64,000 bases of DNA, from NCBI GenBank assembly GCA_002269645.1, contig NIVC01000254.1, positions 186,001-250,000 of the forward strand. Direction: 5' to 3'. Position 1 is the stretch's first letter; each line of letters starts with the position of its first letter. A program made the position numbers and the translations under genes. Shown one piece after another: positions 23,508-63,702 of this stretch. The stretch comes from Macrostomum lignano (taxonomy: Eukaryota). The notes beneath the pieces are model-generated. The model was not told the origin of the DNA. It did not search any database and saw only the letters and a program-made list of their open reading frames with translations.

Positions 23508-23615
23508 GGCTGCCGTTGGTAGAATTCCGCTAGAGAATGCTTCGTGGAAATGGGAAATTGCTTCTTCTTTCCAAGTTTTTGGTTATGGAATTTTTAGAGC
23601 GCGTTGGAATTTTCC

Positions 23616-23623
23616 TATTTATA
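23616..23623 (-). promoter_or_regulatory. TATA box of BHMT-1
   Basis: TATAAATA on the minus strand about 110 nt upstream of the ATG. Confidence 0.6.
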
Positions 23624-24101
23624 GACGCGGTCATTTCCGGCGACCTTGGCGGCTGGGGGTGGGGAAACCCCCGATTAAAAGCCGGTTTTTGCCGAAACCG
23701 GTCCAGTGACATTCCAGACCGGCAACCGGTTTTGCCTTTCCAGGACGATCTGATAATTATTGCGAAATCGCGTGCACCAAGGTCGCAGATGCGTTGCTGT
23801 TTTTGTCACACCGCCCGGTTGGGTTGGGCAGGCGTTCTGGATTGGCCAGCTATTTCTATTGAGAAAAGGCTCAGGCGGAGAGGTCACGAGGGTCACGTGA
23901 TTGCAAGAGGCAGCTAAAATCGAGGGGTGGAGCTCGGAAGAGGCGAAACTTGAAGTTGCAAATAAAGTTCTGTCGGATTGTTAATTCAGACAGTAGAAAA
24001 TGTCACGTGACCTAATGTACGTTGAAATAGGCTACGCCCTTATCAGCAGTTTCTTGTCTCTCGAACAGTAACTTAGTTTATTTGTCAACAAAGGTAGTTA
24101 A

Positions 24102-24119
24102 ACCTGGTTAGAACCAGTT
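24102..24119. promoter_or_regulatory. CNRG-N6-CNRG (Grainyhead/CP2-type) double site upstream of BHMT-1
   Basis: ACCTGGTTAGAACCAGTT: CTGG (24104-24107), 6 nt, CCAG (24114-24117). A single AACCGGTT also lies at 23724-23731. Confidence 0.5.
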
Positions 24120-24499
24120 AAAGCCACTTGTGTTCTCGCAATTACGAAACTTTTGCTAAATTGGAATTTTCCTTAAAACATAAAATATCATTTTCATTCA
24201 ACTGGAAAATCTACCGAGGTTAGAAAATTCCGCTTGAATTGTTTTCTTCTATAGGAATTTTCTGCAGGCTTCATCTGAGCCTGTCCTGCAGCCCAATAAA
24301 TAGGTCAAGATGCTTAGTTGTTCGAAGATTAACAAATCTTTAGCTTGGGCGACTAAGGCTGGAAGATTAACATCTTCTTGGCCTGCATCTGTCAGGTGAG
24401 AATATTGAGAATTATGAACTTCGATTTTATGCCTCTCTTTTAAAGTTTGTGTCATAAATTTGTAGTTAGGGTAGTGTGCAGCAGTGTGTTTCAGAGCCA

Positions 24500-25085
24500 C
24501 TCATCACGGTGACCCCATGATGGTGACCCGTCACGTTGACTCCCTCGCGGTGACTCAATCACAGTGGTTTTATCACGGGGACTCCCATCATGTTGACTCA
24601 ATCACGGTGAGTCTATGATGTTGACCCATTCACGGTGACTCCATCACGGTGACTCCATCATGGTGACTCCATCACGGTGACTCCATCACGGTGACTCCAT
24701 CACCTTGACTCAATCACGGTGACTCATTCACGGTGACTCCATCTCCTTGACTCAATCACGGTGACTCATTCACGGTGACTCCATCACCTTGACTCAATCA
24801 CGGTGACTCAATCTCGGTGTTTCAATCACAGTGACTCCAAGATGTTGACCCATCACGGTGACTTCATCACGGTGACTCCATCACGGTGACTCCATCACGG
24901 TGACTCCATCACGGTGACTCCATCACAATGACTCCATCACGGTGACTCCATCACAATGACTCCATCACGGTGACTTCATCACGGTGACTTCCATCACAAT
25001 GACTTCATCACGGTGACTCCATCACGGTGACTCCATCACGGTGACTTCCATCACGGCGACTCCATCATTTTGACCCAATCACGGC
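24500..25085. repeat. 14-bp minisatellite TGACTCCATCACGG
   Basis: Degenerate tandem units in the BHMT-1/DMGDH intergenic region. Confidence 0.9.
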
Positions 25086-25339
25086 ACCTCAGCACTACTA
25101 CATGAACCTGTAGTTTGAGATGAGAACCATACACAATTCATTGAAATTTCATTGCCTATTAATTTTATGAACAGAAATTGAAAATGATTACAGGTGAAAT
25201 ATTCTTTTCAAAAGGTGAATTAGGTAAACAGAGACGCCACCTCATTCTGTTTGGCGCCTTCCATTTCAGCCTGTTTGCAATGCATTGAGTCATTCGGTGC
25301 CCCTTGAGTCATTTGGCGCTTTTAGGGGTTGGCGTCCCC

Positions 25340-26235
25340 AATGAATCCGCCATTTGGCGCCCCCCATCGTATATTTTTGGCGCCCCTATTGGATCTATTT
25401 GGCGCCCCTATTGGATCTATTTGGCGCCTCTATTGGATCTATTTGGTGCCTCCATTGGATCAATTTGGCGCCCCCATTGGATCTATTTGGCACCCCTATT
25501 GGATCTATTTGGCGCCCATATTGAACCTATTTGGCGCCACCATTTGATCTATTTGGCGCCCCCATTGAATCTATTTGGCGCCCCCATTGGATCTATTTGG
25601 CGCCCATATTGAATCTATTTGGCGCCACCATTTGATCTATTTGGCGCCCCCATTGGATCAATTTGGCGCCCCTATTGGATCTATTTGGCGCCCCCATTGG
25701 ATCTATTTGGCGCCCCCATTGAATCAATTTCGTGCCCCTATTGGATCTATTTGGCGCCCCCATTGGATCTATTTGGCGCCCCCATTGGATCTATTTGACG
25801 CCCCCATTGCATCAATTTGGCGCCCCTATTGAATCTATTTGGCGCCCCCATTGAGTCAATTTGGCGCCCCTATTGGATCTATTTGGCGCCCCCATTGAGT
25901 CAATTTGGCGCCCCTATTGGATCTATTTGGCGCCCCCATTGAATCTATTTGGCGCCCCCATTGGATCTATTTGGCGCCCCCATTGGATCTATTTGGCGCC
26001 CCCATTGGATCAATTTGGCGCCCCTATTGAATCTATTTGGCGCTCCTATTGGATCTATTTGGCGCCCCCATTGAATCTATTTGGCGCCCCCATTGGATCT
26101 ATTTGGCGCCCCCATTGGATCTATTTGGCGCCCCCATTGGATCAATTTGGCGCCCCTATTGAATCTATTTGGCGCTCCTATTGGATCTATTTGGCGCCCC
26201 CATTGAATCTATTTGGCGCCCCCATTGAATCTATT
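25340..26235. repeat. 22-bp minisatellite ATTTGGCGCCCCCATTGGATCT
   Basis: About 40 tandem units. Confidence 0.93.
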
Positions 26236-26701
26236 TTAAGCGCACAAATTTCGGTTATTGCATGCTGATTCAGATCTGAACTTCACATAAACATTAACTT
26301 GGTCACAGTCACAATCTTGAATATGCTTGAAATTATAATAGCGATATTTTTCCAGGCACGTATGTTAGTGTTTACACCCAGCTGTGCAACAAACTGTGCG
26401 TGTGTGTTGACAGCCCCCGCATGAGCTGTGCTTGTTATGAACTTTTCGGGTGCAATCCGTATTTTCCCTTGTTTCTTTTTTTAAGTTCTAACAGAAAAAT
26501 GGCATATACTATTTTCTCAAGTATGGGTAGTCTCACTTTCCTAGAGTGACTCACATTTAACCTTGGCGAGCAACTTCATTTAAACAAGATTTAATAACTT
26601 TGCCATTACGGCTATAATTTTCGTTTTGGTTCTATCAAGTTGTGTCCAGTTTGTTCAAGTTTACTTGAACCGAAATGACTGAATTGAGTAAACACACGGA
26701 A

Positions 26702-26719
26702 AACCGGTTTAAACCGGTT
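26702..26719. promoter_or_regulatory. Perfect 18-bp palindrome AACCGGTTTAAACCGGTT upstream of DMGDH
   Basis: Two AACCGGTT sites at 10-bp pitch; identical copy at 43808-43825. Confidence 0.6.
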
Positions 26720-26863
26720 CTTCTGCTGTCTGCCGCAGCAAACTCTTGCCCCTGTCTAGTGGGTTGCTGACTTGTACAGGTTTGAGATTAGTCAGAGTGG
26801 CCTTGAAGTTCTGGGGGGTGTGGACGCGCAGGTCATGTGATCTGTCTTTTTTGCTTTCTTCAG

Positions 26864-26883
26864 AATACTACTGTGTAATCTAG
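26864..26883 (+). other. Probable 20-nt non-coding 5' exon of DMGDH
   Basis: Pyrimidine tract plus CAG acceptor (26861-26863) and GTAAG donor (26884); next acceptor at 27993-27994, just upstream of the ATG. Confidence 0.5.
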
Positions 26884-27054
26884 GTAAGAGTAGTATAGTG
26901 CTTGAAATCCAAATATTTTAAGCTATTTTATTTCTTCTCTTAGTTTCTCCTGTAGCTCAACTTGGCATACCTACTCAAAGCTGCAAGTGTTGATTAAAAA
27001 ATTGTGTTGCGTAGTGTTGAGTAAAAATAATAAGTGTAAAATTTATAGCCTGTG

Positions 27055-27952
27055 CTCAGTCTCAGTCATAGATTGTTTACAGTCTCAGTCATAGATTGTG
27101 TACAGTCTCAGTCATAGATTGTTTACAGTCTCAGTCATAGATTGTTTACAGTCTCAGTCATAGATTGTGTACAACAGTCTCTGTCATAGATCGTTTACGG
27201 TCTCAGTCATAGACTGTTTACAGTCTCAGTCATAGATTGTGTACAACAGTCTCAGTCATAGATTGTGTACAACAGTCTCAGTCATAGATTGTGTACAACA
27301 GTCTCAGTCATAGATTGTGTACAACAGTCTCTGTCATAGATTGTTTACGGTCTCAGTCATAGATTGTGCACAGTCTCAACCATAGACTGTGTACAACAGT
27401 CTCAGTTATAGATTGTGTACAACAGTCTCAGTCATAGACTGTTTACAGTCTCAGTCATAGATTGTGTACACTCTCAGTCATAGATTGTGTACAACAGTCT
27501 CAGTCATAGATTGTGTACAACAGTCTCAGTCATAGATTGTGTACACTCTCAGTCATAGATTGTGTACAACAGTCTCAGTCATAGATTGTTTACAGTCTCA
27601 GTCATAGATTGTGTACAACAGTCTCAGTCATAGATTGTGTACACTCTCAGTCATAGATTGTGTACAACAGTCTCAGTCATAGATTGTTTACACTCTCAGT
27701 CATAGATTGTGTACAACAGTCTCAGTCATAGATTGTGTACAACAGTCTCAGTCACAGATTGTGTACACTCTCAGTCATAGATTGTGTACAACAGTCTCAG
27801 TCATAGATTGTTTACAGTCTCAGTCATAGATTGTGTACAACAGTCTCAGTCATAGATTGTGTACACTCTCAGTCATAGATTGTGTACAACAGTCTCAGTC
27901 ATAGATTGTTTACACTCTCAGTCATAGATTGTGTACAACAGTCTCAGTCATA
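27055..27952. repeat. 23/26-bp minisatellite CAGTCTCAGTCATAGATTGTGTA(CAA)
   Basis: Tandem units; same family as 9410-10228. Confidence 0.95.
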
Positions 27953-28011
27953 GAGATTGCAGTCAGCGCTGGTCGTTAGACGATGTCACGGCAGGTTGTA
28001 AAGAATATTTA

Positions 28012-31000
28012 ATGGAAATGTTCATTCTCAGTAGTGTCAAAAGCATCAGTTGTTCTGCATTATCCTACCCTCGCAGGGCTCTCTCGTCTTCCACAGCGCA
28101 CCAGCGCCAGCACCCTCTGTCCAAGCGATCGAGCAATGAAGCCGAAGTTGTAATCATTGGCGGTGGCATTGTGGGCGTCAGCACTGCTTACCATTTGGCT
28201 AAGGCCGGAGTTAAGGATGTTGTACTGTTGGAGAAATCTGAACTTACCGCCGGTTCTACTTGGCACGCTGTGAGTAGCGTGTTTAGCGTATGGTTGATAA
28301 AATTGCTGACAAAATGTTAAATAAAATATTGAATTTTTGTTACTTTTATCTCTGTGAATAATTTTACTTCAAAAAAAGACAGTTATGTTGATTTTATCTC
28401 GCAGTTAAGTGTTCCATTCCTTTGTAACAGTTCAGTGCCATTCCTTTGTAACAGTTCAGTGCCATTCTTTTGTAACAGTTCAGTGCCATTTCTGTCTAAC
28501 AGTTTAGTGCCATTCCTGTCTAACAGTTCAGTGCCATTCCTGTGTAACAGTTCAGTGCCATTCCTGTCTGACAGTTCAGTGCCATTCCTGTGTAACAGTT
28601 CAGTGCCATTCCTGTGTAATAGTTCAGTTCCATTCCTGTGTAACAGTTCAGTGCCATTCCTGTGTAACAGTTCAGTGCCATTCCTGTGTAATAGTTCAGT
28701 GCCATTCCTGTCTAACAGTTCAGTGCCATTCCTGTCTGACAGTTCAGTGCCATTCCTGTCTAACAGTTCAGTGCCATTCCACTGTAACAGTTCAGTGCCA
28801 TTCCTGTGTAACAGTTCAGTGCCATTCCTGTGTAACAGTTCAGTGCCATTCCTGTGTAACAGTTCAGTGCCATTCCTGTGTAACAGTTCAGTGCCATTCC
28901 TGTGTAACAGTTCAGTGCCATTCCTGTGTAACAGTTCAGTGCCATTCCTGTCTAACAGTTCAGTACCAGTTCTGTCTAACAGTTTAGTGCCATTCCTGTG
29001 TAACAGTTCAGTGCCATTCCACTGTAACAGTTCAGTGCCATTCCTGTGTAACAGTTCAGTGACATTCCACTGTAACAGTTCAGTGCCATTCCACTGTAAC
29101 AGTTCAGTGCCATTCCTGTGTAACAGTTCAGTGCCATTCCTGTGTAATAGTTCAGTGCCATTCCTGTGTAATAGTTCAGTGCCATTTCTGTTTAACAGTT
29201 CAGTGCCATTCCTGTGTAACAGTTCAGTGCCATTCCTGTGTAACAGTTCAGTGCCATTCCTGTGTAATAGTTCAGTGCCATTCCTGTGTAATAGTTCAGT
29301 GCCATTCCTGTGTAACAGTTCAGTGCCATTCCTGTGTAATAGTTCAGTGCCATTCCACTGTAACAGTTCAGTGCCATTCCTGTGTAACAGTTCAGTGCCA
29401 TTCCTGTGTAATAGTTCAGTTCCATTCCTGTGTAACAGTTCAGTGCCATTCCTGTGTAACAGTTCAGTGCCATTCCTGTGTAATAGTTCAGTGCCATTCC
29501 TGTCTAACAGTTCAGTGCCATTCCTGTCTGACAGTTCAGTGCCATTCCTGTCTAACAGTTCAGTGCCATTCCACTGTAACAGTTCAGTGCCATTCCTGTG
29601 TAACAGTTCAGTGCCATTCCTGTGTAACAGTTCAGTGCCATTCCTGTGTAACAGTTCAGTGCCATTCCTGTGTAACAGTTCAGTGCCATTCCTGTGTAAC
29701 AGTTCAGTGCCATTCCTGTGTAACAGTTCAGTGCCATTCCACTGTAACAGTTCAGTGCCATTCCTGTGTAACAGTTCAGTGACATTCCACTGTAACAGTT
29801 CAGTGCCATTCCACTGTAACAGTTCAGTGCCATTCCTGTGTAACAGTTCAGTGCCATTCCTGTGTAATAGTTCAGTGCCATTCCTGTGTAATAGTTCAGT
29901 GCCATTTCTGTTTAACAGTTCAGTGCCATTCCTGTGTAATAGTTCAGTGCCATTCCTGTGTAATAGTTCAGTGCCATTTCTGTTTAACAGTTCAGTGCCA
30001 TTCCTGTGTAACAGTTCAGTGCCATTCCTGTGTAACAGTTCAGTGCCATTCCTGTGTAATAGTTCAGTGCCATTCCTGTGTAATAGTTCAGTGCCATTCC
30101 TGTGTAACAGTTCAGTGCCATTCCTGTGTAATAGTTCAGTGCCATTCCTGTGTAATAGTTCAGTGCCATTCCTGTGTAATAGTTCAGTGCCATTCCTGTG
30201 TAACAGTTCAGTGCCATTCCTGTCTAACACACAGAAAATGTTCTATCAAAACTGTGTCCCAACACGCAGGCCGGCCTCACCACATTCTTCCACCCGGGCA
30301 TTAACGTGCGCCGCGTCCATTACTACAGCATGCAGCTGTACTCTCAGCTCGAGGCGGAGACTGACCAACCAGTGGGTCTGCACACTCCAGGCTCCCTGCG
30401 CCTCATCACTACGCCGACTCGCATGGACGAGGCCCGATATCAGATGTCCCGGGCAGCCTGGTGCCAAGCCGAACAGCACCTAGTCGGACCGGAGAAATGC
30501 TTGGAATTGTGTCCACTGCTCAACATGAGCACAGTGCTGGGTGGGATCTACAACCCTGGAGATGGTCACATCGATCCCTACTCGGTCACAATGGCGCTAG
30601 CCGCCGGGGCGCGTAAGTATGGCGCCGAGCTGTACCAGAACAGCCAGGTACGCGCCACTAGCCAGGACTCAAAAGGTATCTGGACAATAGTGACTGATCA
30701 CGGCGAACTCAAATCCAAGCATCTGGTCAACGCGGCTGGATTTCACGCTCGTGACGTTGGAAAACTGTCGGGATTGGACCTGCCAATCATTCCGGTGCAT
30801 CATCAGTACGTCATCACCAAAGCTGTGCCTGAGGTGGTCGAACTGAAGCGAGAGCTTCCTGTACTGCGTGACTTGGAAGCCTCCTACTATCTTCGCCAGG
30901 AGAAGCAGGGCCTCTTAGTTGGGCCGTACGAGTCTGCGGAGAACATGATGCTCTGCACTGACTGGTACGATAACGGGGTGCCGGACTCGTTCGGTAGGGA

Positions 31001-34000
31001 GCTGTTTGAGCCGGACCTTGGCCGAATCATGCCTCACCTGGAGCGCGCCATGGAGATGGTGCCGGCGATGCAGAACGCCGAGATTCAATCCGTCATATCC
31101 GGGCCGATCACCTACAATGCGGAGAATGCCGGACTGATTGGCCCGGTGGAGGGGCCGCTGAATTATTGGTTGCTAGGCGGCCTTGGTTACGGCATAATCC
31201 ACGGTGGCGGCGTTGGCAAATACGTGGCGGACTGGATTCGTACTGGCGAACCGCCGTACGATTTGATTGAGCTGGACGCTAACAGGTATGGCAGAGTTTG
31301 GGGTCGGCAATTGTGTGTTTAGACTGGGAAACCGTGTGTTTAGATTGGGGCAACCGTTTCTTCGGAGTGGGACAATTTAAAAGTCAGGGCCGCTATACGT
31401 ACACCTTGTGTGACCGCTTACCTTTTTACGCATCCGTGTGCGTGCTCCGGGATGAGCGGATCGATCATCGAGCTGCTTGACTTTTCGCTTTTGCCCCAAA
31501 GCGAGCCAACTACCCAACTAACCATCCGACAGGTACGGCTGGTGGGCCGACCGGAGCTACACGCACGCGAAGAGCCGCGAGACCTACGGGCTGAATAACG
31601 CTGTCGGCTATCCCAAGGAGGAGCGATTCGCCGGCAGGCCAACGAAACGCGCTGCTCAGACCAGCGCCCTGTACGACGAGTTGAAATCGGCCGGTGCCGA
31701 GTTCGGCTTTCACAACGGCTGGGAGCAGCCGCACTGGTTCGGCTTGACCGAGGAGGAGCGACGCTACGAGCCTTCTTTCCGACGAGGGAACTGGTTCCCA
31801 GCGATGCAGCGGGAATGCGAGGGAGTGCTCAACCGGGCTGGCGTTATGGATATTACGCCATTTTCAAAGTTCGAGATTTCTGGTATGTGGCGTTAGGGTT
31901 TGAACTAGTGTCACTCTGAATCTGCCAATGTGTCACTCTGAATCTGCCAATGTGTCACTCTGAATCTGCCAATGTGTCACTCTGAATCTGCCAATGTGTC
32001 ACTCTGAATCTGCCAATGTGTCACTCTGAATCTGCTAATGTGTCACTCTGAATCAGCCAATGTGTCACTCTGAATCTGCTAATGCGTCACTCTAAATCAG
32101 CCAATGTGTCACTTTGAATCTGCCAATGTGTCACTCTGAATCAGCCAATGTGTCACTTTGAATCTGCCAATGTGTCACTCTGAATCAGCCAATGTGTCAC
32201 TCTGAATCAGCCAATGTGTCACTCTGAATCAGCCGATGTGTTGTCACTCTGAATCTGCCAATGTGTCACTCTGAATTAGCCAATGTGTCACTCTGAATCA
32301 GCCAATGTGTCACTCCGAATCTGCCAATGTGTCACTCTGAATCAGCCAATGTGTCACTCCGAATCTGCCAATGTGTCACTCTGAATCAGCCAATGTGTCA
32401 CTCCGAATCTGCCAATGTGTCACTCTGAATCAGCCAATGTGTCACTCCGAATCTGCCAATGTGTCACTCTGAATCAGCGAATGTGTCACTCCGAATCTGC
32501 CAATGTGTCACTCTGAATCAGCCAATGTGTCACTCTAAATCTATCATTGTCACTTTGAATGTCTGAATGTCACTCGTTAGATGCAGGAGGCTGTGTGCAC
32601 CCTGGCGCACCTTAAGCGACATTGTCACACAACCGGCCAGAGACATTGCTGCCCGTTTCGCCGACTCCCCTAAGCAGACACACAAGCGCGCGGATACGTA
32701 CGCAGTCATACGCACAGGCACACAGTCACACAGGAGTGTACAGCGGCCCTTTTATCGTTAGGCATGTACGCTTTACCGTGCCTTGGGGGTTGGCCCTCAA
32801 AGGCGTTAATTGCACGAGCAGAGCCAAGCCGAGATTCCAATTCAGCCCTAAATTAATGTGACTGCACTTGGAATCGAGCCTGGGCCGCTGGCACATCAGA
32901 GCCTGCGCTGGACCGCTGGGCTCCGGCCTCAGTTCTGAATCTGACAGTTGTCCAATGGCCAGTCATTAGAATCCATAACCATAATCCAAGAAATATTGTT
33001 TTTCACTGGGTTTTCTCATTGCATTCAAAATATCAAGGTTTCCAAGCAGAATGCATCTAACAAGACCAACCCTCAAAAATTCTCAACAAGGCCCTCGAGC
33101 CGGTGAATTCCTGGACCTGGTGACTGCAAACCGACTGCCCAAAGTGAACCGCACCTGCATCACGCACATGCTCACGCCAAGGGGCCGAGTGTTCTCTGAG
33201 ATGACTCTGACTTGCTTGCCAGCCGATGATGGCCAACAGAAGTTCCTGGCCCTGACCGGTTCCGGCTCCGAGATGCACGACCTCATCTGGCTGAAGGACT
33301 GGCGACACAAACTCCGCTTCCAGGACGGCGTCAAGATCGACAACGTCACGGATTCGATCGGCTGCCTGTCTGTAGCCGGTCCGCTGTCCCGCGAAATTCT
33401 TCAGTCGTTGACCTCGGAGAGCCTCGATGCGGGGTCTTATCCGTTTCTGCAGGCTAAGCAGCTGCAAATTGATGGAGTCGACTGCTTGGCCATCAGAATA
33501 TCCTACACAGGAGAGCTGGGCTGGGAGCTCTACTGCGGGATCGGAGAGCTGCCCAGGCTGTACAAATCCATCTGGCGGTCTGGACAGCCGCGCGGTCTGG
33601 TGAACTTCGGCTCGTACGCGATGAACTCGCTCCGGCTGGAGAAAGGGTTCGCCATGTGGGGAGCCGAGATGAACTGCGACACTGGCCCATTGGAGGCTGG
33701 CCTCGGCGGCTTCATCAGGCTGGGAAAGTCTGCAGATTTTGTTGGGAAAGCTGCCGTGGCGGAGGCGAAGCTGAAACTGCAACAGGATGGAGCCCGTCAG
33801 TTGAGGATGCTGCGAGTTGACAGTGTTGACGTGGATCCTGAAGGCAACGAATCAGTCTGGTTGGACGGCAAGGTGAGCAAACCGTACCTGGTTTTACTTA
33901 TTTCATAGATTATCGAACAGTTTATAGTAAAATATGAAAGCGAGTTAACCTACTCGCTTATAAAATCATTTTATAAAATCAAATAAAATCAAAATCATTA

Positions 34001-35935
34001 TCCCTAAACAAACAAACAAGTATGATAATTACAGACAGATTAAAAAGTAGGGTTTCCTTGGTTGCTCAGAATCGTGCGTTCGTTTGATGTGGCATTGTTA
34101 TTAACGGAGTACAGTGGTCTATTGTTCCATAGCTAACTAATTTCCGGGCATTAATCAAATCATTTAACTGAGTGGTTAGAACAGAGCAACTAAACAAAAT
34201 GCTATTGTATTTGTACCAGTATTCCATTCTTCATGCGGTACAATGCAGAATTCCCTAAGCTAATCTATTCTTCCTACTTTAGTAAAGATTATTAAAAGCT
34301 CCTCCAATTCATCTGACTTCCTCATAGAGGCATTAATCTTGTATTTGCATCATATATACCGGTAGATTTGTACTTTAGTGTACGGTAATATAGAGATATA
34401 ATGAGTTGGAAATTTTGGCTAAATCGTTCAACCTTAGCAAGGGCCTTGATACATGAATGATGTGTAACTTTTACATGTACGTTTAAATCGTGAAACTTTT
34501 TATGCAAAACCTTGAGTTTAAATCTCACCGAATCTAGATCTATCCACCAAATCTCTATTCTTCTGCCTAAATCAACCTAAATCTAGATTCATCTACCTAA
34601 AGCTGGACTCATCAACCTAAATCTAGACCTATCTACCTGAATTTAGATTCATCTAACTAAATCTAGATTCATCTACCTAAATCTAGACCCATCAACCTAA
34701 ATCTAGACCCATCAACTTAAATCTAGATTCATCTATCTAAAGCTAGACTCATCAACCTAAATCTAGACCTATCTACCTGAATTTAGATTCATCTAACTAA
34801 ATCTGGATTCATCTACTTAAATCTAGATTCATCTACCTAAATCTGGATTCATCTACTTAAATCTAGATTTATCTAACTAAATCTGGATTCATCTACCTAA
34901 ATCTAGATTCATCTACCTAAATCTAGATTCATCTACCTAAATCTAGATTCATCTACCTAAATCTGGATTCATCTACCTAAATCTAGATTCATCTAACTAA
35001 AGCTAGATTCATCTACCTAAATCTAGACCTATCTACCTGAATTTAGATTCATCTAACTAAAGCTAGATTCATCTACCTAAATCTAGATTCATCTAACTAA
35101 AGCTAGATTCATCTACCTAAATCTAGACCCATCAAACTAAATCTAGACCCATCAAACTAAATCTAGACCCATCAAACTAAATCTAGACCCATCAAACTAA
35201 ATCTAGACCCATCAACCTAAATCTAGACCCATCAAACTAAATCTAGACCAATCAACCTAAATCTAGACCCATCAAACTAAATCTAGACCCATCAAACTAA
35301 ATCTAGACCCATCAAACTAAATCTAGACCCATCAAACTAAATCTAGACCCATCAAACTAAATCTAGACCCATCAAACTAAATCTAGACCCATCAACCTAA
35401 ATCTAGACCCATCAAACTAAATCTAGACCAATCAACCTAAATCTAGACCCATCAAACTAAATCTAGACCCATCAAACTAAATCTAGACCCATCAACCTAA
35501 ATCTAGACCCATCAACCTAAATCTAGACCCATCAAACTAAATCTAGACCCATCAAACTAAATCTAGACCCATCAAACTAAATCTAGACCCATCAAACTAA
35601 ATCTAGACCCATCAAACTAAATCTAGACCCATCAAACTAAATCTAGACCCATCAAACTAAATCTAGATATATCTACCTAAACCTTCGCAATAAACCACCA
35701 CTCAAACCCCTAAAAGGTGGTCGGCAACACGACATCCGGTAGCTACAGTTTCAGCCGCGGTCACGGACTCGCCTTTGCATACGTGCCCGCCAGCCTGGGC
35801 GCCGGCACCCAGCTGGAGGTGGATCTTCTCGGTCGTCGCGTCCCGGCAGTGGTGCTGTCGAAACCACCGTTGCTGCCGGAGCAGGCGAGAAAGAAGAAAC
35901 CCGAAGCGGCATCCGTTGGTTCGAGTCAGCAATGA
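28012..35935 (+). CDS. DMGDH: Dimethylglycine dehydrogenase, mitochondrial (5 coding exons, about 874 aa)
   Basis: Exons 28012-28269 (alternative start 28018), 30270-31285, 31533-31882, 33091-33872, 35717-35935; 2625 nt with consistent phases. Transit-peptide-like N-terminus; FAD motif VIIGGGIVG; [18 protein letters not shown] (flavinylated His context); [12 protein letters not shown]; LRLEKGF; [10 protein letters not shown]. The TTFFHPGIN and EERFAGRP motifs favour DMGDH over SARDH. Confidence 0.95.
28410..30228. repeat. 24-bp minisatellite GTAACAGTTCAGTGCCATTCCTGT, in a DMGDH intron
   Basis: About 75 units; source of the 709-aa and 615-aa repeat ORFs. Confidence 0.97.
31910..32545. repeat. 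22-bp minisatellite TGTCACTCTGAATCTGCCAATG
   Basis: About 28 units in a DMGDH intron. Confidence 0.95.
32690..32930 (-). mobile_element. tRNA-derived SINE
   Basis: Minus strand GAGGCCGGAGCCCAGCGGTCCAGCGC..GGCTCGATTCC gives A-box-like and B-box-like (32870-32880) elements without a complete cloverleaf. The 3' boundary is a guess. Confidence 0.5.
34540..35680. repeat. 20-bp minisatellite ATCTAGACCCATCAAACTAA / ATCTAGATTCATCTACCTAA
   Basis: Two variant zones within the last DMGDH intron. Confidence 0.95.
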
Positions 35936-37296
35936 TCTGGATCACGATAGTCATTGTGGTTCATGATGACGATTAGAAAATTGATTGTGTACAGATAGAG
36001 ATAGATTCGTGATTAGATTGGGATATAAACATGATTAGATTGGAATACAATCGTGATTATATTGGGATAATCGTTATTAAATTTGTATATAATCGTGATT
36101 TATATTGGGATAATCGTTATTAGATTTCGATATAATCGTGATTAGATTGAGATAGAATCGCGATTAGTTTTAGATAGAACCGTCATTAGTTCGCTGTTAT
36201 TAGGATTCATTGTAGATATTGACAGGGATATGTTATAATGTCACTTCGTTAAGTACGACCTTTTTGATTGATTTATTTCCTTTAACAAATGTTTGTTTCC
36301 TAATTATAATGTAAATCTTCCATCGGACTCAGTCCGGAAATTCTCGTCACAAAATATGTTCGTTCAATAGTTTATCTATAAGATCTATATATAAAAATAG
36401 ATTTGTGGGTTAATGTATTTATTAGGGTAAAATTCTGTCATTAAATGCCCTTGACAGAAACTGGTGCAGATTTGATTTATTTTTTGTTTACTTTATTATA
36501 CTTCTAAAATTGTTTATAAAATTTGGATTTTGCTTAATCTTGTTCTCATTTTTCAGATCTCTCAGTAATTTCGGTTGCTGCCACGTAGTGCGAGAAATCA
36601 TTGATTTAGTAAATTTTTATGCTGTCTTTATTAATTAATAAATATTATGTTATAAGCAATCTTTTGTAAAATGATCCTGATTAGTAATGCGCATTCTAAT
36701 AAATTAAATTTACATACCAATAGCTACAGTTCTCGTCGTAAATACCTTTTTTTTTTAAATACATCCTTATTTATTGCCGGTGTGTGTTCGTAAAACTGTG
36801 CTTTTTCCGGCTTGAGAATAATTTAACACATTTTCTAATGTTAGTTAAAGGTTTGAAAAAAATAAATTTAAAATAAGGGCAAAGTTTTCAATGTGGACGA
36901 AACAAACAGGGTTTTTTTAAATTTCAGTATATTTATTTTGCTGTGGGGTGGCAGCCGTACAGTCTAAAATTTCACTTAGCTTATACTAGACGTCTATAGA
37001 CCTAGTAATGCTCGCTAAAACAATTTAATGTTGACTGGAGTAAATTGAAAGCAATAATGAATAAGTTTTTTATAGCTAATGTCTAAGAAATGATGAAAAA
37101 ATTAAAACTGTCAGAAACGTTTTAGCTTACTGCGTTTTAATTTGCAAAATTATTCTTGTAGAGTAGAATGACCTTTCTCGAAACTTTTTATCATCGATTT
37201 ACTAAGACTTCGTGTATGAATTTCGCAGCAGCCATAATTATCAATGAGGAAGATGACAATGAAACAAATAAAAAGCAAATGGTTGATTTATTTTTT

Positions 37297-40200
37297 CTAT
37301 TTCTTCCTCATCTGCTGGCCCAGCTGCTTCACTCGATTGTCTTCCTCTTCGGTGGTCTCGTGCGCGTGCTGCACCAGCATCTCGCTGCCGCGGGTAACGC
37401 CCCAGTTGTCCGGCCTGCTCATGGCGGCCGAGTATGGCCGACCGCTGGCCGGGTTCAGGTTCTCCCAGTAGTCCCGGCCAGACCGGGCTCGAATCCACGG
37501 TTTAGTGCTCATTTTCATTCCGCCGCCCCAGGCGATGTGCTTCTCGGAGCCGGCTGGGAATCGGCCTCTTTCGGCGGCGAGCTCCTCGGCGATGGCGCGG
37601 ATGTGATAGGCCTCGAAGCCGCAGCAGCCGCCAATGTAGCGGACGCCAAGGTCGTAGGCAGCCCTGCCAGATTTAAAATATACCGATTTTACTACTTATT
37701 ATACTACTGCTGATTCTAATATAGACTTGCGAAATCGCTTCTGTTGCACTGCATGCTGGTTTAAAACAATTGACAATTTTAATTCAACAATTTGAAGCTT
37801 CAAAAAGTATGAATTAGACTAATGGTGAATTGATTAGACTAATAGTGAATTGATTAGACTAATGGTGAATTGATTAGACTAATGGTGAATTGATTAGACT
37901 AATGGTGAATTTATTAGACTATTGGGGCATGGTTTAGACTAATAACGCATGAATTAGACTAATAAGGCGTGGATTAGACTAATAACGTATGAATTAGACT
38001 AATAAGGCATGGATTAGACTAATAAGGCATGGATTAGACTAATAAAGCATGGATTAGACTAATAAAGCATGGATTAGACTAATAAAGCATGTATTAGACT
38101 AATAAAGCATGGATTAGACTAATAAGGCATGGATTAGACTAATAAGGCATGGATTAGACTAATAAAGCATGGGTTAGACTAGTAAGGCATGGATTAGACT
38201 AATAAAGCATGGATTAGACTACTAAAGCATGGGTTAGACTAGTAAGGCATGGATTAGACTAATAAGGCATGGATTAGACTAATAAGGCATGAATTAGACT
38301 AATAAGGTATGGATTAGACTAATAAGGCATGGATTAGACTAATAAGGCATGGATTAGACTAACAAGGCATGGATTAGACTAATAAGGCATGGATTAGACT
38401 AATAAAGCATGGATTAGACTAATAAAGCATGGATTAGACTAATAAAGCATGGATTAGACTAATAAAGCATGTATTAGACTAATAAGGCATGGATTAGACT
38501 AATAAGGCATGGATTAGACTAATAAGGCATGGATTAGACCAAAGGACAATAAATGTAGATTCAACCTGTCTCACCTAGCGAAGCGGTGCATGTCCCAGCG
38601 GGTGCACAATCGACTCTCCATGGCCAAAGGAAACTCGGGCAGGTCGATGCAGCCCTGCTTCTCAGCATCCGGAGTCATATAGGCCACGGGCTGGCACATC
38701 AGGTAGGCCTTGAGATTCTCGCGCTCCAAACCAGCCTTCATCAGCTTGATCGCTTCCAGGGTGACAAACGGATCGAAGTGGCAGTTGACGCCCACGAGTT
38801 TCGCACCAGCGCGAGCCATACGGACGGCGCAGTCGCCCGCGGAGTTGCCGTGCATGTCGCCTTGCGGTCCGATGCACATCGTGCAGGCCACGGGCAGCCC
38901 GGTCTCCAGCCCGACCTGCGGCGGGGGGGGCGTTGTTGGTTGGCTAGATTAGCAATCCATTATCACGTACTTTAATTTCCTGATTTGGCTAGATTAGCAA
39001 TCCATCATCGTGTACTTTAATTTCCTGATTTGGCAAGATTAGCAATCCATCATCGTGTACTTTAATTTCCTGATTTGGCTAGATTAGCAATCCATCATCG
39101 TGTACTTTAATTTCCTGATTTGGCTAGATTAGCAATCCATCATCGTGTACTTTAATTTCCTGATTTGGCTAGATTAGCAATCCATCATCGTGTACTTTAA
39201 TTTCCTGATTTGGCTAGATTAGCAATCCATCATCGTGTACTTTAATTTCCTGATTTGGCTAGATTAGCAATCCATCATCGTGTACTTTAATTTCCTGATT
39301 TGGCTAGATTAGCAATCCATCATCGTGTACTTTAATTTCCTGATTTGCCTAGATTAGCAATCCATCATCGTGTACTTTAATTTCCTGATTTGGCAAGATT
39401 AGCAATCCATCATCGTGTACTTTAATTTCCTGATTTGGCTAGATTAGCAATCCATCATCGTGTACTTTAATTTCCTGATTTGCCTAGATTAGCAATCCAT
39501 CGTGTACTTTTATTCCTTATTTGGCTAAATTAGCTATATATCGTGTACTTTTATTTTCTGATTTGGCTAGATTAGCAATCCATCATCGTGTACTTTAATT
39601 TCCTGATTTGGCTAGATTAGCAATCCATCATCGTGTACTTTTATTCTCTGATTTGGCTAGATTAGCAATCCATCGTGTACTTTTATTTCTTATTTGGCTA
39701 AATTAGCTATATATCGTGTACTTTTATTTCTTATTTGGCTAAATTAGCTATATATCGTGTACTTTTATTTTCTGATTTGGCTAGATTAGCAATCCAATAC
39801 AGCCTGCAATTTTATTAATAATTTGGATCAGTTTGTGGATAATTTGAAAATGCTAGTCCATGGTCGAAACCAATGCCAAAAATGAGGTCTGTTCGAACTG
39901 TTTCGACCATAGACTAACATATTCTTTGCAATTTTTTTAACACCGAGTCGAGTATCTTACCTCAATGGCCCACTCTGCCTCCTCAACATGCTCAAAGTAC
40001 TCGCACAGCACCAAGTCGGCTCCTTCGGCCTTGAAAGTCTGCATCTGGCCACGGAAGATGGCCTGGATTGAAGCTTTGTCACCGCCGCTCAGGTAGGTCG
40101 GAGTCTGGCACACTCCGCCTAGAAACAGGGCGTCACCTTCTTGAGCGACCTCACGAGCAATGCGACACGCGGCGGTGTTGATGGCGGTGCACTGAAATTC

Positions 40201-41358
40201 AAGGGGGGTTGACTATATATTAGCAATCCATTCTATGGGTTTGATAGATTAGCAATCCATTCTATGGGTTTGATAGATTAGCAATCCATTCTATGGGTTT
40301 GATAGATTAGCAATCCATTCTATAGGTTTGGCTATAGATTAGCAATCCATTCTATAGGTTTGCTAGATTAGCAATCCATTCTATAGGTTTGATAGATTAG
40401 CAATCCATTCTATAGGTTTGATAGATTAGCAATCCATTCTATAGGTTTGATAGATTAGCAATCCATTCTATAGGTTTGGCTATAGATTAGCAATCCATTC
40501 TATAGGTTTTGCTATAGATGAGCAATCCATTCTATGGTTTGGCTATAGATTAGCAATCCATTCTATGGTTTGGCTATGATTTAGCAATCTGTTCTATGGT
40601 TTAGCTATAGATTAGCAATCCATTCTATGGTTTAGCTATAGATTAGCAATCCATTCTATGGTTAGGCTATAGATTAGCAATCCATTCTATGGTTTGGCTA
40701 CAGATTTGCAATCCATTCTATAGGTTTGGCTATAGATTAGCAATCCATTCTATGGTCTGGCTATAGATTAGCAATCCATTCTATGGTTTGGCTATAGATT
40801 AGCAATCCATTTGGGTCACTTGGGTCACTTAATATAAGAAGGATCATACAGAATTTTCAGCGTTGTGAAATTTCGATCTTATGAATCCCCTCCCATCCAT
40901 TTTATTAATATGAACGCCAGTTTGAGCTAAATTACTAACGATCTGAAAAAAGTTTTACAAACAGTTTAGTAGAAAGAGTCGAATCAAAAAGTGTGAGGCG
41001 AAATCAAAGAGCTGTTTTTGTATCTCTCCAGATGAAGCGTCGAAGCAGATTGCTCAAGCGTTCTCATGTGCTCAAACTCTAAGTCTCACCCCATACTTTT
41101 CCTGAGCCGTGTTGCCTCTATTGGAAAGCTTGTCCTCGCTGGCATAGTAAGTGAACGCCTGCATCACATCAGAGCCGGCTCTGAGAAACTCGCGATGCAG
41201 CTGCTTCACAGCTTCTGGGTACTCGACCACCGCTTCCGGTGTCCACGGCCCCGCCTTGACGTAGCCGCGCTTCTCCAGGGCGAACACGAAGCCGCCGTCT
41301 CCAATGACAACCTCGCCGTTGTCAAGCCGCTCCAGAATGCCGCGTCTTTTGTTTGACA

Positions 41359-41359
<1 letters not shown>
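37297..41359 (-). CDS. BHMT: Betaine-homocysteine S-methyltransferase, copy 2 (4 exons, 402 aa)
   Basis: Exons 41359-41090, 40191-39961, 38915-38575, 37663-37297; 1209 nt, GT-AG introns with consistent phases; GVNC and GGCCG Zn ligands intact. Confidence 0.93.
37810..38540. repeat. 20-bp minisatellite GGATTAGACTAATAAGGCAT, BHMT-2 intron 3
   Basis: About 36 units. Confidence 0.95.
38940..39795. repeat. 45-bp minisatellite GGCTAGATTAGCAATCCATCATCGTGTACTTTAATTTCCTGATTT, BHMT-2 intron 2
   Basis: About 19 units. Confidence 0.95.
40218..40812. repeat. 28-32-bp minisatellite with core AGATTAGCAATCCATTCTAT, BHMT-2 intron 1
   Basis: Shares AGATTAGCAATCCAT with the 45-bp unit. Confidence 0.92.
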
Positions 41360-41360
<1 letters not shown>

Positions 41361-41422
<62 letters not shown>

Positions 41423-41423
41423 G

Positions 41424-41506
<83 letters not shown>

Positions 41507-41527
41507 GTGTCTGTCTGTGTGTCTGTG

Positions 41528-41612
<85 letters not shown>

Positions 41613-41624
41613 GCCTGTCTGTCT
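41361..41624. repeat. (GTCT)n microsatellite, read as (CAGA)n in the BHMT-2 5' UTR
   Basis: About 66 units ending one base before the ATG at 41359. Confidence 0.97.
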
Positions 41625-41659
41625 GCTGATTTTCCGCACTATCAGTCGCAGCTGTTGCA

Positions 41660-41710
41660 TATATATACCCACAGCTACTCCGTCCAAATGAAAACCAGTT
41701 CCAGCTGGTT
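41660..41710 (-). promoter_or_regulatory. Proximal BHMT-2 promoter: TATA-like box plus CNRG-N6-CNRG site
   Basis: TATATATA at 41667-41660; CCAG-TTCCAG-CTGG at 41695-41708. Confidence 0.5.
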
Positions 41711-42324
41711 TTACAATCAAACTTATCGATTCGAAACTTTTTCTTAAGTTGACCCAAGAAGTCTGAGCATTGGAAAAGATTCGAGATTTCTGAGAGCAGC
41801 TTATCGTGAAACCTAGTAAACATGGCTTCCTACCCTCGTCAAACCCGCAATTCAGGTTCCACATTTCTCTAGTCCAAGGAGTTCCGAAATTTTGCATCGG
41901 AATCAAAATTAATTTTTTTCATTGAAAATAAAACAACTCTTTCTTTTAATAAGCTGTATTCAAACTCACTGTCTCTTTACATCGCGAGATTTTAAATTAA
42001 TCAATCTAATTTTCAAGTATTTCTGTAGATTTACATTCCAGATCTGTTAGTTAACGCAGTCCTTGTTCAGCTTTAGTCTAGATAGTAAAACAATTTTGAG
42101 ACTTGGTCATTATCTGTGAGTAAGCTGCTAGGGGGTAAACTAGGGGGGGGGGGTACGTATTAAACACCTGAGGAATTCTCACGCAGTTCCTCAGCTCACG
42201 TTTTCGATACGTTGCGCCACGAAACTCGCTTTGGCTCAGTTTGGGGCGTTCACAGACAATTTCTGTGTTTGTGTTATATGAATTGAGGGCAGATTTAATG
42301 ATACAGTAGTTTATAAAACTGCTT

Positions 42325-43295
42325 TCTGGGTGCTGAGGTCACTGGGTGCTGAGGACACTGGGTGCTGAAGTCACTGGGTGCTGAGGACACTGGGTGCTGA
42401 GGACACTGGGTGCTGAGGACACTGGCTGCTGAGGTCACTGGCTGCTGAGGTCACTGGGTGCTGAGGACACTGGGTGCTGAGGACACTGGGTGCTGAGGAC
42501 ACTGGGTGCTGAGGACACTGGGTGCTGAGGTCACTGGCTGCTGAGGTCACTGGGTGCTGAGGACACTGGGTGCTGAGGACACTGGGTGCTGAGGACACTG
42601 GGTGCTGAGGACACTGGGTACTGAGGACACTGGGTGCTGAGGACACTGGTTGCTGAGGACACTGGGTGCTGAGGTCACTGGGTGCTGAGGACACTGGGTG
42701 CTGAGGTCACTGGGTGCTGAGGACACTGGGTGCTGAGGACACTGGCTGCTGAGGTCTCTGGGTGCTGAGGACACTGGGTGCTGAGGATACTGGGTGCTGA
42801 AGTCACTGGGTGCTGAGGACACTGGGTGCTGAGGACACTGGGTGCTGAAGTCACTGGGTGCTGAGGACACTGGGTGCTGAGGACACTGGGTGCTGAGGAC
42901 ACTGGGTGCTGAGGTCACTATCTGCTGAGGTCACTGGGTGCTGAGGACACTGGGTGCTGAGGACACTGGGTGCTGAGGACACTGGGTGCTGAGGATACTG
43001 GGTGCTGAAGTCACTGGGTGCTGAGGACACTGGGTGCTGAGGACACTGGGTGCTGAAGTCACTGGCTGCTGAGGACACTGGGTGCTGAGGACACTGGGTG
43101 CTGAGGACACTGGGTGCTGAGGTCACTGGCTGCTGAGGACACTGGGTGCTGAGGACACTGGGTGCTGAGGACACTGGGTGCTGAGGACACTGGGTGCTGA
43201 GGTCACTGGCTGCTGAGGTCACTGGGTGCTGAGGTCACTGGGTGCTGAGGACACTGGGTGCTGAGGACACTGGGTGCTGAGGTCACTGGTTGCTA
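42325..43295. repeat. 16-bp minisatellite GACACTGGGTGCTGAG
   Basis: About 60 units. Confidence 0.95.
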
Positions 43296-43392
43296 AGGAG
43301 CTCCATTTTGAGGATATTCTGCAGCTGAAGATTTAAGGAGAAAGACAGAAAACCAAAATAATTTCAAAAGCCACTATCAGCCACAAACTCAC

Positions 43393-43662
43393 CCCGAATT
43401 TCTGCGATGCAGTGTTGCCCCGGTTGGAAAGCTTGTCCTCGCTGGCATAGTAAGTGAACGCCTGCATCACATCAGAGCCGGCTCTGAGAAACTCGCGATG
43501 AAGCTGCTTTACAGCTTCCGGGTATTCGACCACCGCTTCCGGTGTCCACGGCCCCGCCTTGACGTAGCCGCGCTTCTCCAGGGCGAACACGAAGCCGCCG
43601 TCTCCAATGACAACCTCGCCGTTGTCAAGCCGCTCCATAATGCCGCCTCTTTTGTTCGACAT
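43393..43662 (-). CDS. BHMT: Duplicated BHMT first coding exon; probable alternative first exon of BHMT-2 (90 codons)
   Basis: Intact ATG-initiated 270-nt exon, GTGAGT donor in phase 0, 85/90 aa identical to exon 41359-41090. No exon-2 sequence between 43392 and 41360. Confidence 0.75.
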
Positions 43663-43747
43663 GGTAAATGATGAGGCCGTGGCTGGTGCTGGGACTCTCT
43701 GGTGGATTCTGAACTTTTCGAGTAGCGCGGATTGTTTGAAATCGGGC

Positions 43748-43825
43748 TATTTATATCCACTTACAGCCGAGATTTGCGCCTGTCTCTCTCTCACCCCTCG
43801 GTCTCGGAACCGGTTTAAACCGGTT
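43748..43825 (-). promoter_or_regulatory. Distal BHMT promoter: TATA box plus 18-bp palindrome
   Basis: TATAAATA at 43755-43748; AACCGGTTTAAACCGGTT at 43808-43825. Confidence 0.6.
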
Positions 43826-44194
43826 CTGTTTAACTATTTTATTGACCGATAAAGTCAAACGCTCCTGACCTAGATAGTGCCACGTACCACCGACTCAGTT
43901 GGCCATGGAGATCTGCAAGAATTGACAATATATGAGACTGCAACACAGCATCGATTGGTTAAATAAAGCTTGGTTTTCAGCAAACCAATTGCTAGACTCA
44001 GACCTCCATGATGACTCTCTCTGGAGACTTTGACATGCCGCTGGACTTGCTGCAATATCTATGTTGTCAATGGAAATACCTGGCGAGGTAACTCGCCGCT
44101 AAAAATGTAACTCAGGAAATGGAAAATTCTAATAATTGCAACCGTAAACATAAAGGTCAAATCTTAGATTCCGTTCTTTAATAACAAATAATTA

Positions 44195-44524
44195 GCACCA
44201 GGGGCTTTAGCACCAAGGGGCTTTAGCACCAGGGACTTTAGCACCAGGGACTTTAGCACCAGGGACTTTAGCACCAGGGTCTTTAGCACCAGGGGCTTTA
44301 GCACCAGGGGCTTTAGCACCAGGGACTTTAGCACCAGGGGCTTTAGCACCAGGGGCTTTAGCACCAGGGACTTTAACACCAGGGGCTTTAGCACCAGGGG
44401 CTTTAGCACCAGGGACTTTAGCACCAGGGGCTTTAGCACCAGGGGCTTTAGCACCAGGGGCTTTAGCACCAGGGGCTTTAGCACCAGGGGCTTTAGCACC
44501 AGGGGCTTTAGCACCAGGGGCTTT
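44195..44524 (+). repeat. 15-bp satellite, left part (interrupted by the LTR element)
   Basis: TTTAGCACCAGGGGC units continue at 48940. Confidence 0.95.
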
Positions 44525-50396: not shown

Positions 50397-50757
50397 AAAA
50401 CCTCTTTTTGCTGGTGTCCTATAGGCTCACAATCGCACTTGAAGTGGCGCCCTACCGCTGGCACTCTTAACCGTTTGAGCACACTGTCGTCCCAAGGTGA
50501 AGCCTTAGCAGTTCTGAATTCCGCAAAATGAGTTGCCTGCTATAGACAGAACTCAGTTCTAGCTTGCAGTCAGGCAGGCAGAAAGATGAGACTTCCTGAC
50601 AGTATCGATCCATTTTTTTATGCCAAGTAGACACTGCAAGCTTGCGTACCGGCTGCAAGATACCTTAGCTCTCATTAAAAGCTGGAATTTATGAGATACT
50701 TGATACCTGTCAGTCATAGTCACGCAATCCGCTTCGGTAGCACTTTTAGTTTGTTTA

Positions 50758-52423
<1,666 letters not shown>

Positions 52424-52604
52424 GCAGCAATTGTGCACAACAACATCATAATCAGGAAGGTGCTAGATGAATGCAGCAAAAGTACAATGCAAGCTGACTA
52501 ACTTTAATTAAAGTATCATTTTACGAAACAAAGAAAAGCAAGTAACTATAGAGCGCAATAGTAAGATGGAGTCTTTGTTCGATGCCTGATAGTCTTTGTC
52601 TTAT

Positions 52605-59762: not shown

Positions 59763-63702
<3,940 letters not shown>

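Follow-up and report, generated by a model that had tools for sequence, protein, structure and literature searches.

A duplicated palindromic Grainyhead/CP2-type site in the BHMT-DMGDH gene cluster of the flatworm Macrostomum lignano

The gene cluster and the exact 20-mer

The window analyzed here is a 64,000-nucleotide stretch of the Macrostomum lignano genome (contig NIVC01000254.1, positions 186,001 to 250,000; all coordinates count from its first letter). Protein searches identified it as the BHMT-DMGDH-BHMT cluster of this flatworm, a set of betaine-catabolism genes; the assignment to Macrostomum came through BHMT only, as the first search with the DMGDH protein gave no Macrostomum match. 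Our subject is a 20-mer, AACCGGTTTAAACCGGTTCT, which occurs exactly in this cluster at 26702-26721 and 43808-43827 and has no third copy in the 64 kb. Since both reference BHMT genes, Mlig031806g1 and Mlig026652g1, are located on contig NIVC01000293.1 and the window is 94-98% identical to that contig at the nucleotide level, the window is, as judged by this identity, the same cluster in a further copy, haplotype or assembly. The genes, their TATA boxes and the two copies of the 20-mer are arranged as follows.

22125..23507, minus strand: BHMT paralogue with its ATG at 23507 and a single short intron, head-to-head with DMGDH
24310..24395, plus strand: DMGDH exon 1, 28 codons resembling a mitochondrial presequence, in a phase that matches exon 2 and coinciding with the end of an NCBI gene call
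28077-28269, ~30270-31295, 31528-31884, 33066-33875 and 35714-35911, plus strand: DMGDH exons 2 onward
43387..43662, minus strand: BHMT exon 1a, the distal first exon, with its ATG at 43662; used in M. lignano P0104 (96.7% identity)
41087..41359, minus strand: BHMT exon 1b, the duplicated first exon, with its ATG at 41359; ATG and splice donor are intact
40200-39946, 38918-38574 and 37665-37300, minus strand: remaining exons of this four-exon BHMT gene, which matches Mlig026652g1
43748..43755, minus strand: TATA-type box TATAAATA of the BHMT exon 1a promoter, read directly
23616..23623, minus strand: TATA-type box TATAAATA of the BHMT paralogue promoter, read directly
41659..41667, minus strand: TATA-like box TATATATAT upstream of BHMT exon 1b
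43808..43827, no strand assigned: exact double site A, 146-165 bp ahead of the BHMT exon 1a ATG, with the TATA box 52 bp downstream of it
26702..26721, no strand assigned: exact double site B, in DMGDH intron 1, with the start codon 2.4 kb upstream and exon 2 lying 1.36 kb downstream

The BHMT paralogue is 98% identical to Mlig031806g1 (P0102) across the 327-aa open reading frame used as query, and 92% identical when the whole protein is aligned by tblastn across the short intron. The NCBI gene call, for an 881-residue DMGDH, ends about 800 bp from this paralogue. In five other species DMGDH likewise has a short first exon, a long first intron and a second exon with the Rossmann motif. The second BHMT copy lies tail-to-tail with DMGDH. 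An earlier note on this DNA had counted four transcription units. Two of them are the BHMT paralogue and DMGDH, and the other two are duplicated alternative first exons that belong to one BHMT gene. The similarity between exons 1a and 1b begins at the ATG and stops at the splice donor, and only the coding part aligns clearly. The two exons are 2.3 kb apart and about 100% identical across the central 200 nt. This pattern suggests gene conversion or mutually exclusive first exons.

The first 18 bases of the 20-mer form a perfect palindrome, AACCGGTTTAAACCGGTT (43808-43825 at site A), and with the adjoining bases each copy falls one mismatch short of a 22-bp palindrome. The sequence can be read as the extended Grainyhead decamer AAACCGGTTT placed twice without a gap, each half being an exact Grainyhead octamer with the critical C and G, and the halves lie one helical turn apart. 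At the same time the CCGG-TTTAAA-CCGG inside the 20-mer fits the CP2 rule (CCGG-N6-CCGG). In shuffled sequence only 0.01 matches to the 20-mer are expected, even with three mismatches allowed. The octamer AACCGGTT is present six times in the window against 0.66 expected; four of these exact octamers belong to the two double sites and one more is found at 23724. These frequencies exclude chance as the source of the two 20-mers.

The flanks of the two sites are unrelated, as the earlier note had stated: within 400 bp on either side nothing beyond the 20 bp is shared. Neither copy overlaps a tandem repeat or a long terminal repeat (LTR) element, both are surrounded by sequence found only once in the window, and no partner inverted copy or target-site duplication was found near them. 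A check that the note itself had named, whether the motif belongs to a repeat or is common in random intergenic DNA, turned out in favor of the 20-mer within this window.

The two copies differ in their positions. Site A lies upstream of the distal BHMT exon, as had been claimed, and its distance of 52 bp from the TATA box there, at the main promoter of BHMT, is classical for a promoter-proximal element. The copy at 26702, described as upstream of DMGDH, is located in intron 1 of that gene, because exon 1, which opens with the ATG at 24310, runs only to 24395 and the next exon begins at 28077. Site B resides there within an 820-bp unique island, 26237-27056, flanked by two minisatellites. We considered an internal promoter at 26702 and rejected it, since no TATA box follows downstream and a candidate non-coding exon (~26790-26886) joined to exon 2 gives no in-frame start codon. 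For the same reasons an intronic enhancer is the more likely role of site B. Two other motifs occur in the vicinity of this site, a second inverted repeat GTTCAAGT-TT-ACTTGAAC at 26653-26670, 32 bp upstream, and an M-box-like TCATGTGA at 26833-26840, 115 bp downstream. Rfam and tRNA scans of the window, including the unique intron island, revealed no RNA genes.

Weaker sites and the remainder of the window

Besides the exact copies, three regions of the cluster contain single or degenerate sites.

23680..23731, no strand assigned: three single Grainyhead-type octamers AGCCGGTT, AACCGGTC and AACCGGTT, together with ACCGGC, 57-108 bp upstream of the BHMT-paralogue TATA box
24102..24129, no strand assigned: degenerate half-sites in 10-bp phase, ACCTGGTT-AG-AACCAGTT-AA-AGCCACTT, matching the palindrome at 13/18 positions twice, 181-208 bp upstream of the DMGDH ATG; covers 24104-24117
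41693..41710, no strand assigned: degenerate double site, 13/18, reading AACCAGCT-GG-AACTGGTT on the minus strand, 25 bp upstream of the exon 1b TATATATAT box; covers 41695-41708

The region 23680-23731, which the earlier note overlooked, is the sole cluster of at least three Grainyhead-type octamers in the 64 kb. In both the exon 1a and the paralogue promoter of BHMT, sites are found 52-108 bp upstream of a TATAAATA box. The window contains 152 CCGG cores, 13 of which have at least 3/4 consensus flanks. These 13 cores pair within 60 bp only at 23680-23731, 26702-26719 and 43808-43825, all of which are regulatory DNA of BHMT or DMGDH. The resulting five pairs in three clusters compare to about 0.15 expected by chance, according to our own estimate.

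The DMGDH exon 1 and BHMT exon 1b promoters had been credited with the same geometry as the exact copies. The strings at 24104-24117 and 41695-41708 are indeed present as written and agree with the palindrome at 13 of the 18 positions. The CNRG-N6-CNRG rule, to which all four proposed sites conform, is matched 112 times in the window against 103.7 expected, and because this is the chance frequency, conformity to it carries no evidential weight. Matches of at least 13/18 to the palindrome number 7 against 1.8 ± 1.4 expected, or 5 against 1.8 when the exact copies are left out. The excess is mild, with three of the five inexact matches falling in the DMGDH and exon 1b promoters. Matches at 9356-9373 (14/18, TACCGCTTTAAACCGCTG) and 62463-62480 (13/18, CACCGGACCAAACCGGCT) lie between minisatellites and distant from the betaine genes. 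Since exon 1b duplicates exon 1a, its site may have arisen as a copy of site A that then decayed, and may not be independent evidence. The half-sites of the degenerate copies stand in inverted (CTGG..CCAG at 24104) or mixed orientation. No orientation can be read from the CCGG cores, which are self-complementary.

The proposal that one double site precedes all four units as a regulon is partly supported by these sequences. It stands for exon 1a (43808), and the paralogue promoter has the octamers at 23680-23731 in place of the proposed site. At DMGDH exon 1 and at exon 1b the matches reach only 13/18, and the exact copy assigned to DMGDH is intronic. A high-quality promoter-proximal site is consequently not present at every unit. 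Five other genes or open reading frames in the window have no such sites. A single stray octamer, at 18335, is absent from the M. lignano reference copy, which does share all five octamers of the clusters.

The remainder of the window is rich in repeats. Minisatellites fill the introns of the cluster, 46 tandem-repeat rows were recorded for the window, and a (GACA)n microsatellite of 265 nt (41360-41625) occupies the interval between the TATATATAT box and the ATG of exon 1b. The upstream region of BHMT is bounded by a retrotransposon.

44524..48939, minus strand: Ty3/gypsy LTR retrotransposon whose LTRs, 217 nt each, are 99% identical

This element is young, with an intact 1272-aa open reading frame, sits in a minisatellite of 15-bp units and is 700 bp upstream of the BHMT promoter site. 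The M. lignano reference copy lacks it, and it does not belong to the site studied here. Long open reading frames with Pfam 'Cornifin' or 'Extensin' matches (28354-30483, 13320-14975, 50691-52451 and others) were rejected as genes; they are stop-free minisatellites, open on both strands, in intronic or intergenic DNA. Elsewhere the window contains an open reading frame with a tetraspanin domain (19951-20689), the 5' part of a gene that has a cyclic-nucleotide-binding domain in its reference counterpart (12000-17589) and a second retro-element integrase fragment (786-1277). The Grainyhead double site was not found at any of these three features of the window. The bidirectional promoter between the BHMT paralogue and DMGDH also carries two E-box or CLEAR-like palindromes GTCACGTGA (23892-23900 and 24002-24010).

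Sites and gene order in other species

Nine further species were compared, i.e. Branchiostoma, Lingula, Capitella, Priapulus, Owenia, Tubulanus, Liolophura, Actinia and Diadema. A Grainyhead-type octamer was defined by fixed C3 and G6, Y4, R5 and at most one mismatch in the flanks. Upstream of the BHMT start the nine species together have 8 such octamers within 300 bp (2.0 expected) and 12 within 500 bp (3.3 expected), an enrichment of roughly fourfold. Local dinucleotide shuffles gave P = 0.0007 for both distances, and P = 0.03 and 0.005, respectively, if Actinia was omitted. Among 64 palindromic families of the same design the Grainyhead family ranked first; the next-best, GAC, overlaps the AAC-YR-GTT family. 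Nine neighboring control promoters showed no enrichment (1 versus 2.2 and 2 versus 3.7). In Actinia the only cluster of three octamers in 28.6 kb spans -186 to -83 relative to BHMT and contains AAACCGGTTT in perfect form. Grainyhead-type sites are found 80-300 bp upstream of BHMT in a cnidarian, the flatworm and several other phyla. Because the definitions were chosen after part of the data had been seen, this cross-phylum enrichment is only suggestive and gives support, not proof.

The 18-mer itself is not repeated in the non-coding DNA of any of the nine species. Matches of 17/18 in Capitella and 15/18 in Owenia and Tubulanus were rejected as deep conservation, since they are DMGDH coding sequence for the peptide NWFxPV. 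The palindrome at 26702-26719, if translated in frame, reads N-R-F-K-P-V, one nucleotide off the conserved DMGDH peptide NWFKPV. The near-copies of the double site in annelid and nemertean DMGDH exons (L006 4350-4367; L011 3494; L012 4732) were taken as a coincidence and a source of false positives. In Tubulanus DMGDH occurs as two copies in tandem (L012 1-9302). Intron 1 of the BHMT-proximal copy (8417-8679) contains five Grainyhead-type octamers against 1.6 expected, including an exact AACCGGTT at 8566, and this is the only species where this was seen. Another exact octamer in Tubulanus is located at -674 of BHMT, 25 bp from the DMGDH start. A first BHMT coding exon of three codons followed by an intron is present in Actinia (L008 10002-10010), Branchiostoma (L003 10001-10009) and Tubulanus (L012 ~10001-10009); the intron is lost in Macrostomum.

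A head-to-head arrangement of DMGDH and BHMT, separated by 0.1-3.8 kb, is seen in Branchiostoma, Lingula, Capitella, Priapulus, Owenia and Tubulanus. In the chiton Liolophura the two are tandem neighbors, and in Actinia and Diadema they are non-adjacent. A short shared DMGDH/BHMT promoter is present in the flatworm (window 22125-24395), amphioxus, a brachiopod, two annelids, a priapulid and a nemertean (L003, L005, L006, L007, L011 and L012, at ~10001). As judged from gene order, the pair is an ancient bilaterian microsynteny of consecutive pathway enzymes, of which we found no description in the literature searched. In Lingula JMY adjoins BHMT, as it does in the human genome.

The human genes form a DMGDH-BHMT2-BHMT cluster at 5q14.1. 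The vertebrate and flatworm clusters have in common that a short promoter is shared by DMGDH and a BHMT gene in head-to-head order, whereas the second flatworm BHMT copy arose independently and is positioned tail-to-tail with DMGDH. The literature searched reports no Grainyhead or CP2 site in the vertebrate cluster. In naive mouse embryonic stem cells the Bhmt, Bhmt2 and Dmgdh mRNAs are jointly increased about 30-fold and the CP2-family gene Tfcp2l1 is also up, which is a correlation only (PMC7994667). Control of BHMT and of the head-to-head pair by Grainyhead/CP2 factors could be ancient and animal-wide, with the induction of these mouse genes in Tfcp2l1-high cells as its vertebrate face, but we consider this extension doubtful.

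Candidate factors and competing explanations

Grainyhead-like (Grhl) proteins bind AACCGGTT as a dimer, its first C as well as its second G being essential (PMC5829564). In that work a C-to-T / G-to-A mutation abolishes Grhl1 binding. CP2/LSF proteins bind CNRG-N5/6-CNRG as a tetramer, with a pair of dimers sitting on the same side of the helix (PMC5829564, PMC9223585). The motif assignments that the earlier note had given as established, the Grainyhead site and CNRG-N6-CNRG as the LSF/TFCP2 tetramer site, are backed by these papers and by PMC3348937. Since Grainyhead specificity is conserved from Neurospora to mammals (PMC3348937), its assignment in a flatworm is reasonable, and the Grainyhead/CP2 family is reported to have arisen before the animal radiation (PMC2873413). 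A protein of this family, acting as two dimers or one tetramer, is the best available candidate for binding the 20-mer.

The sites resemble known Grainyhead targets in the exact 8-bp palindrome with its essential C and G and in their promoter-proximal or intronic positions. They are unusual in that two perfect sites are fused at 10-bp spacing into an 18-bp palindrome, and in that the putative target genes encode betaine-catabolism enzymes instead of barrier, junction or cuticle proteins. With the tetramer sites of LSF/CP2 proteins (TFCP2, TFCP2L1 and UBP1) the 20-mer has in common that the half-sites are one turn apart on the same face (CCGG-TTTAAA-CCGG), which tetramer binding requires, and the degenerate copies carry CTGG and CCAG, the classical LSF half-sites (PMC3348937). 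Classical LSF sites are, however, direct CCAG/CTGG repeats, whereas each half of the 20-mer is a full Grainyhead palindrome, and LSF is reported not to bind a single Grainyhead site (PMC3348937). Matches to the CNRG rule, being at chance level in the window, cannot establish membership of this class.

No paper in the literature searched ties Grainyhead or CP2 factors to BHMT or DMGDH, and the 14-mer core was found in none, which agrees with the statement of the earlier note that the link is undescribed. A review of GRHL targets does not mention BHMT, DMGDH, betaine or one-carbon metabolism. Papers on Macrostomum promoters and multiome data do not mention the motif.

We conclude that the 20-mer is real and non-random and is probably a functional element of Grainyhead/CP2 type. 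The reading that we favor, with about even confidence, is that it represents a high-affinity site for such a factor that would couple BHMT and DMGDH. The 20-mer may be viewed as abutting decamers, (R)AACCGGTTT and AAACCGGTT(C), that are centered 10 bp apart on the same helix face. This arrangement matches a full p53 response element, with the CG core preferred by Grainyhead, and it would hold two Grainyhead dimers or one CP2-type tetramer. Site A, close to the main BHMT TATA box, would serve as a promoter-proximal activator or chromatin-opening site and site B as an intronic enhancer. The weaker sites may serve the bidirectional promoter of the BHMT paralogue and DMGDH and the duplicated BHMT exon 1b. 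In combination the sites would couple the consecutive steps from betaine to dimethylglycine and from there to sarcosine, possibly in the epithelial tissues that the earlier note had in mind.

Several observations speak against this coupling. Classical Grainyhead targets are genes with barrier and adhesion functions and do not encode metabolic enzymes, and one of the two exact copies, site B, is intronic and away from the promoter. All sites are kept in the M. lignano reference copy. Nearby DNA of the two copies is itself 94-98% identical, so this conservation, one of the checks that the earlier note had called for, is uninformative, and the enrichment in nine other species came from definitions that were partly post hoc. 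The broader tests that reached significance all used such definitions. The narrow test that was fixed beforehand (exact octamer or 13/18, from -600 to +200 of BHMT) gave 0/2 for Owenia and Tubulanus. Within 300 bp of BHMT, four species (Branchiostoma, Liolophura, Diadema and Owenia) lack a site, and DMGDH intron 1 of the other species is not enriched (8 versus 9.9 expected).

Another symmetric factor, of the p53/p63 family or specific to flatworms, might use the palindrome as a functional site, which we regard as unlikely. The 20-mer has the complete layout of a p53 response element (RRRCWWGYYY twice), with two spacerless decamers, R-rich and then Y-rich arms, invariant C4 and G7 and a predicted tetramer on one face. 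The DNA-binding domains of Grhl and p53 share a common fold and recognize related target sequences (PMC5829564), and identity over 20 bp could point to a large symmetric complex that we cannot name. Read directly, however, both decamers have a CG core instead of the A/T-rich WW. This core suits Grhl1, which prefers CG or CC, and not p53, which prefers AT or AA (PMC5829564). The octamers at 23680-23731, like the enrichment seen in other phyla, belong specifically to the AAC-YR-GTT family.

The 20-mers could also share a mutational origin without being regulatory, for example by short-patch gene conversion, templated insertion or as a relic of an old duplication, with the weaker matches due to chance. 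We judge this improbable. The identity extends two bases past the palindrome and exceeds what binding strictly needs, the exon 1a/1b pair demonstrates duplication or conversion at this locus, the 13/18 matches are only modestly above chance and one copy is intronic. On the other hand, conversion finds no support in flank homology, and the extended Grainyhead consensus specifies all 18 positions of the palindrome, which leaves two bases to chance. An independent cluster of single octamers at a third promoter and the enrichment upstream of BHMT in unrelated phyla also disagree with this explanation.

It is very unlikely that the 20-mer is a dispersed short repeat or a transposon end that by chance occurs twice here. 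The genome is repeat-rich, as is apparent from the tandem repeats, the young LTR element near site A and the second integrase fragment, and DNA transposons typically have palindromic ends. Yet the two copies are in unique DNA and lack common flanks, inverted partners and target-site duplications nearby and a third copy in the 64 kb, and the reference cluster has the site without the LTR element. An effect through DNA or RNA structure (a cruciform or a pre-mRNA hairpin) is hardly credible, since, despite single-strand folds of -9.0 and -8.5 kcal/mol (z-scores of -4.0 and -3.2 against shuffles), an 8-bp stem is generally too short for stable cruciform extrusion, the BHMT copy is upstream of the TATA box and so probably not transcribed, and structure alone needs no exact repetition of sequence.

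Among marine animals betaine is a major osmolyte, and it also donates methyl groups. A duplicated perfect Grainyhead/CP2-type site at the genes of two consecutive enzymes provides a concrete and cheap hypothesis, involving one factor family and three short sequences, in an animal for which RNA interference and transgenesis are established (PMC5730564). For a known transcription-factor family, BHMT and DMGDH would be new candidate targets. Should the enrichment across phyla be borne out by a proper survey, a family known mainly for epithelial barriers would gain a metabolic or osmoregulatory arm, and there would be a regulatory reason for DMGDH and BHMT to have stayed head-to-head across bilaterians. 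If control were animal-wide, it would tie an epithelial and osmoregulatory factor family to the metabolism of the osmolyte betaine and of methyl groups.

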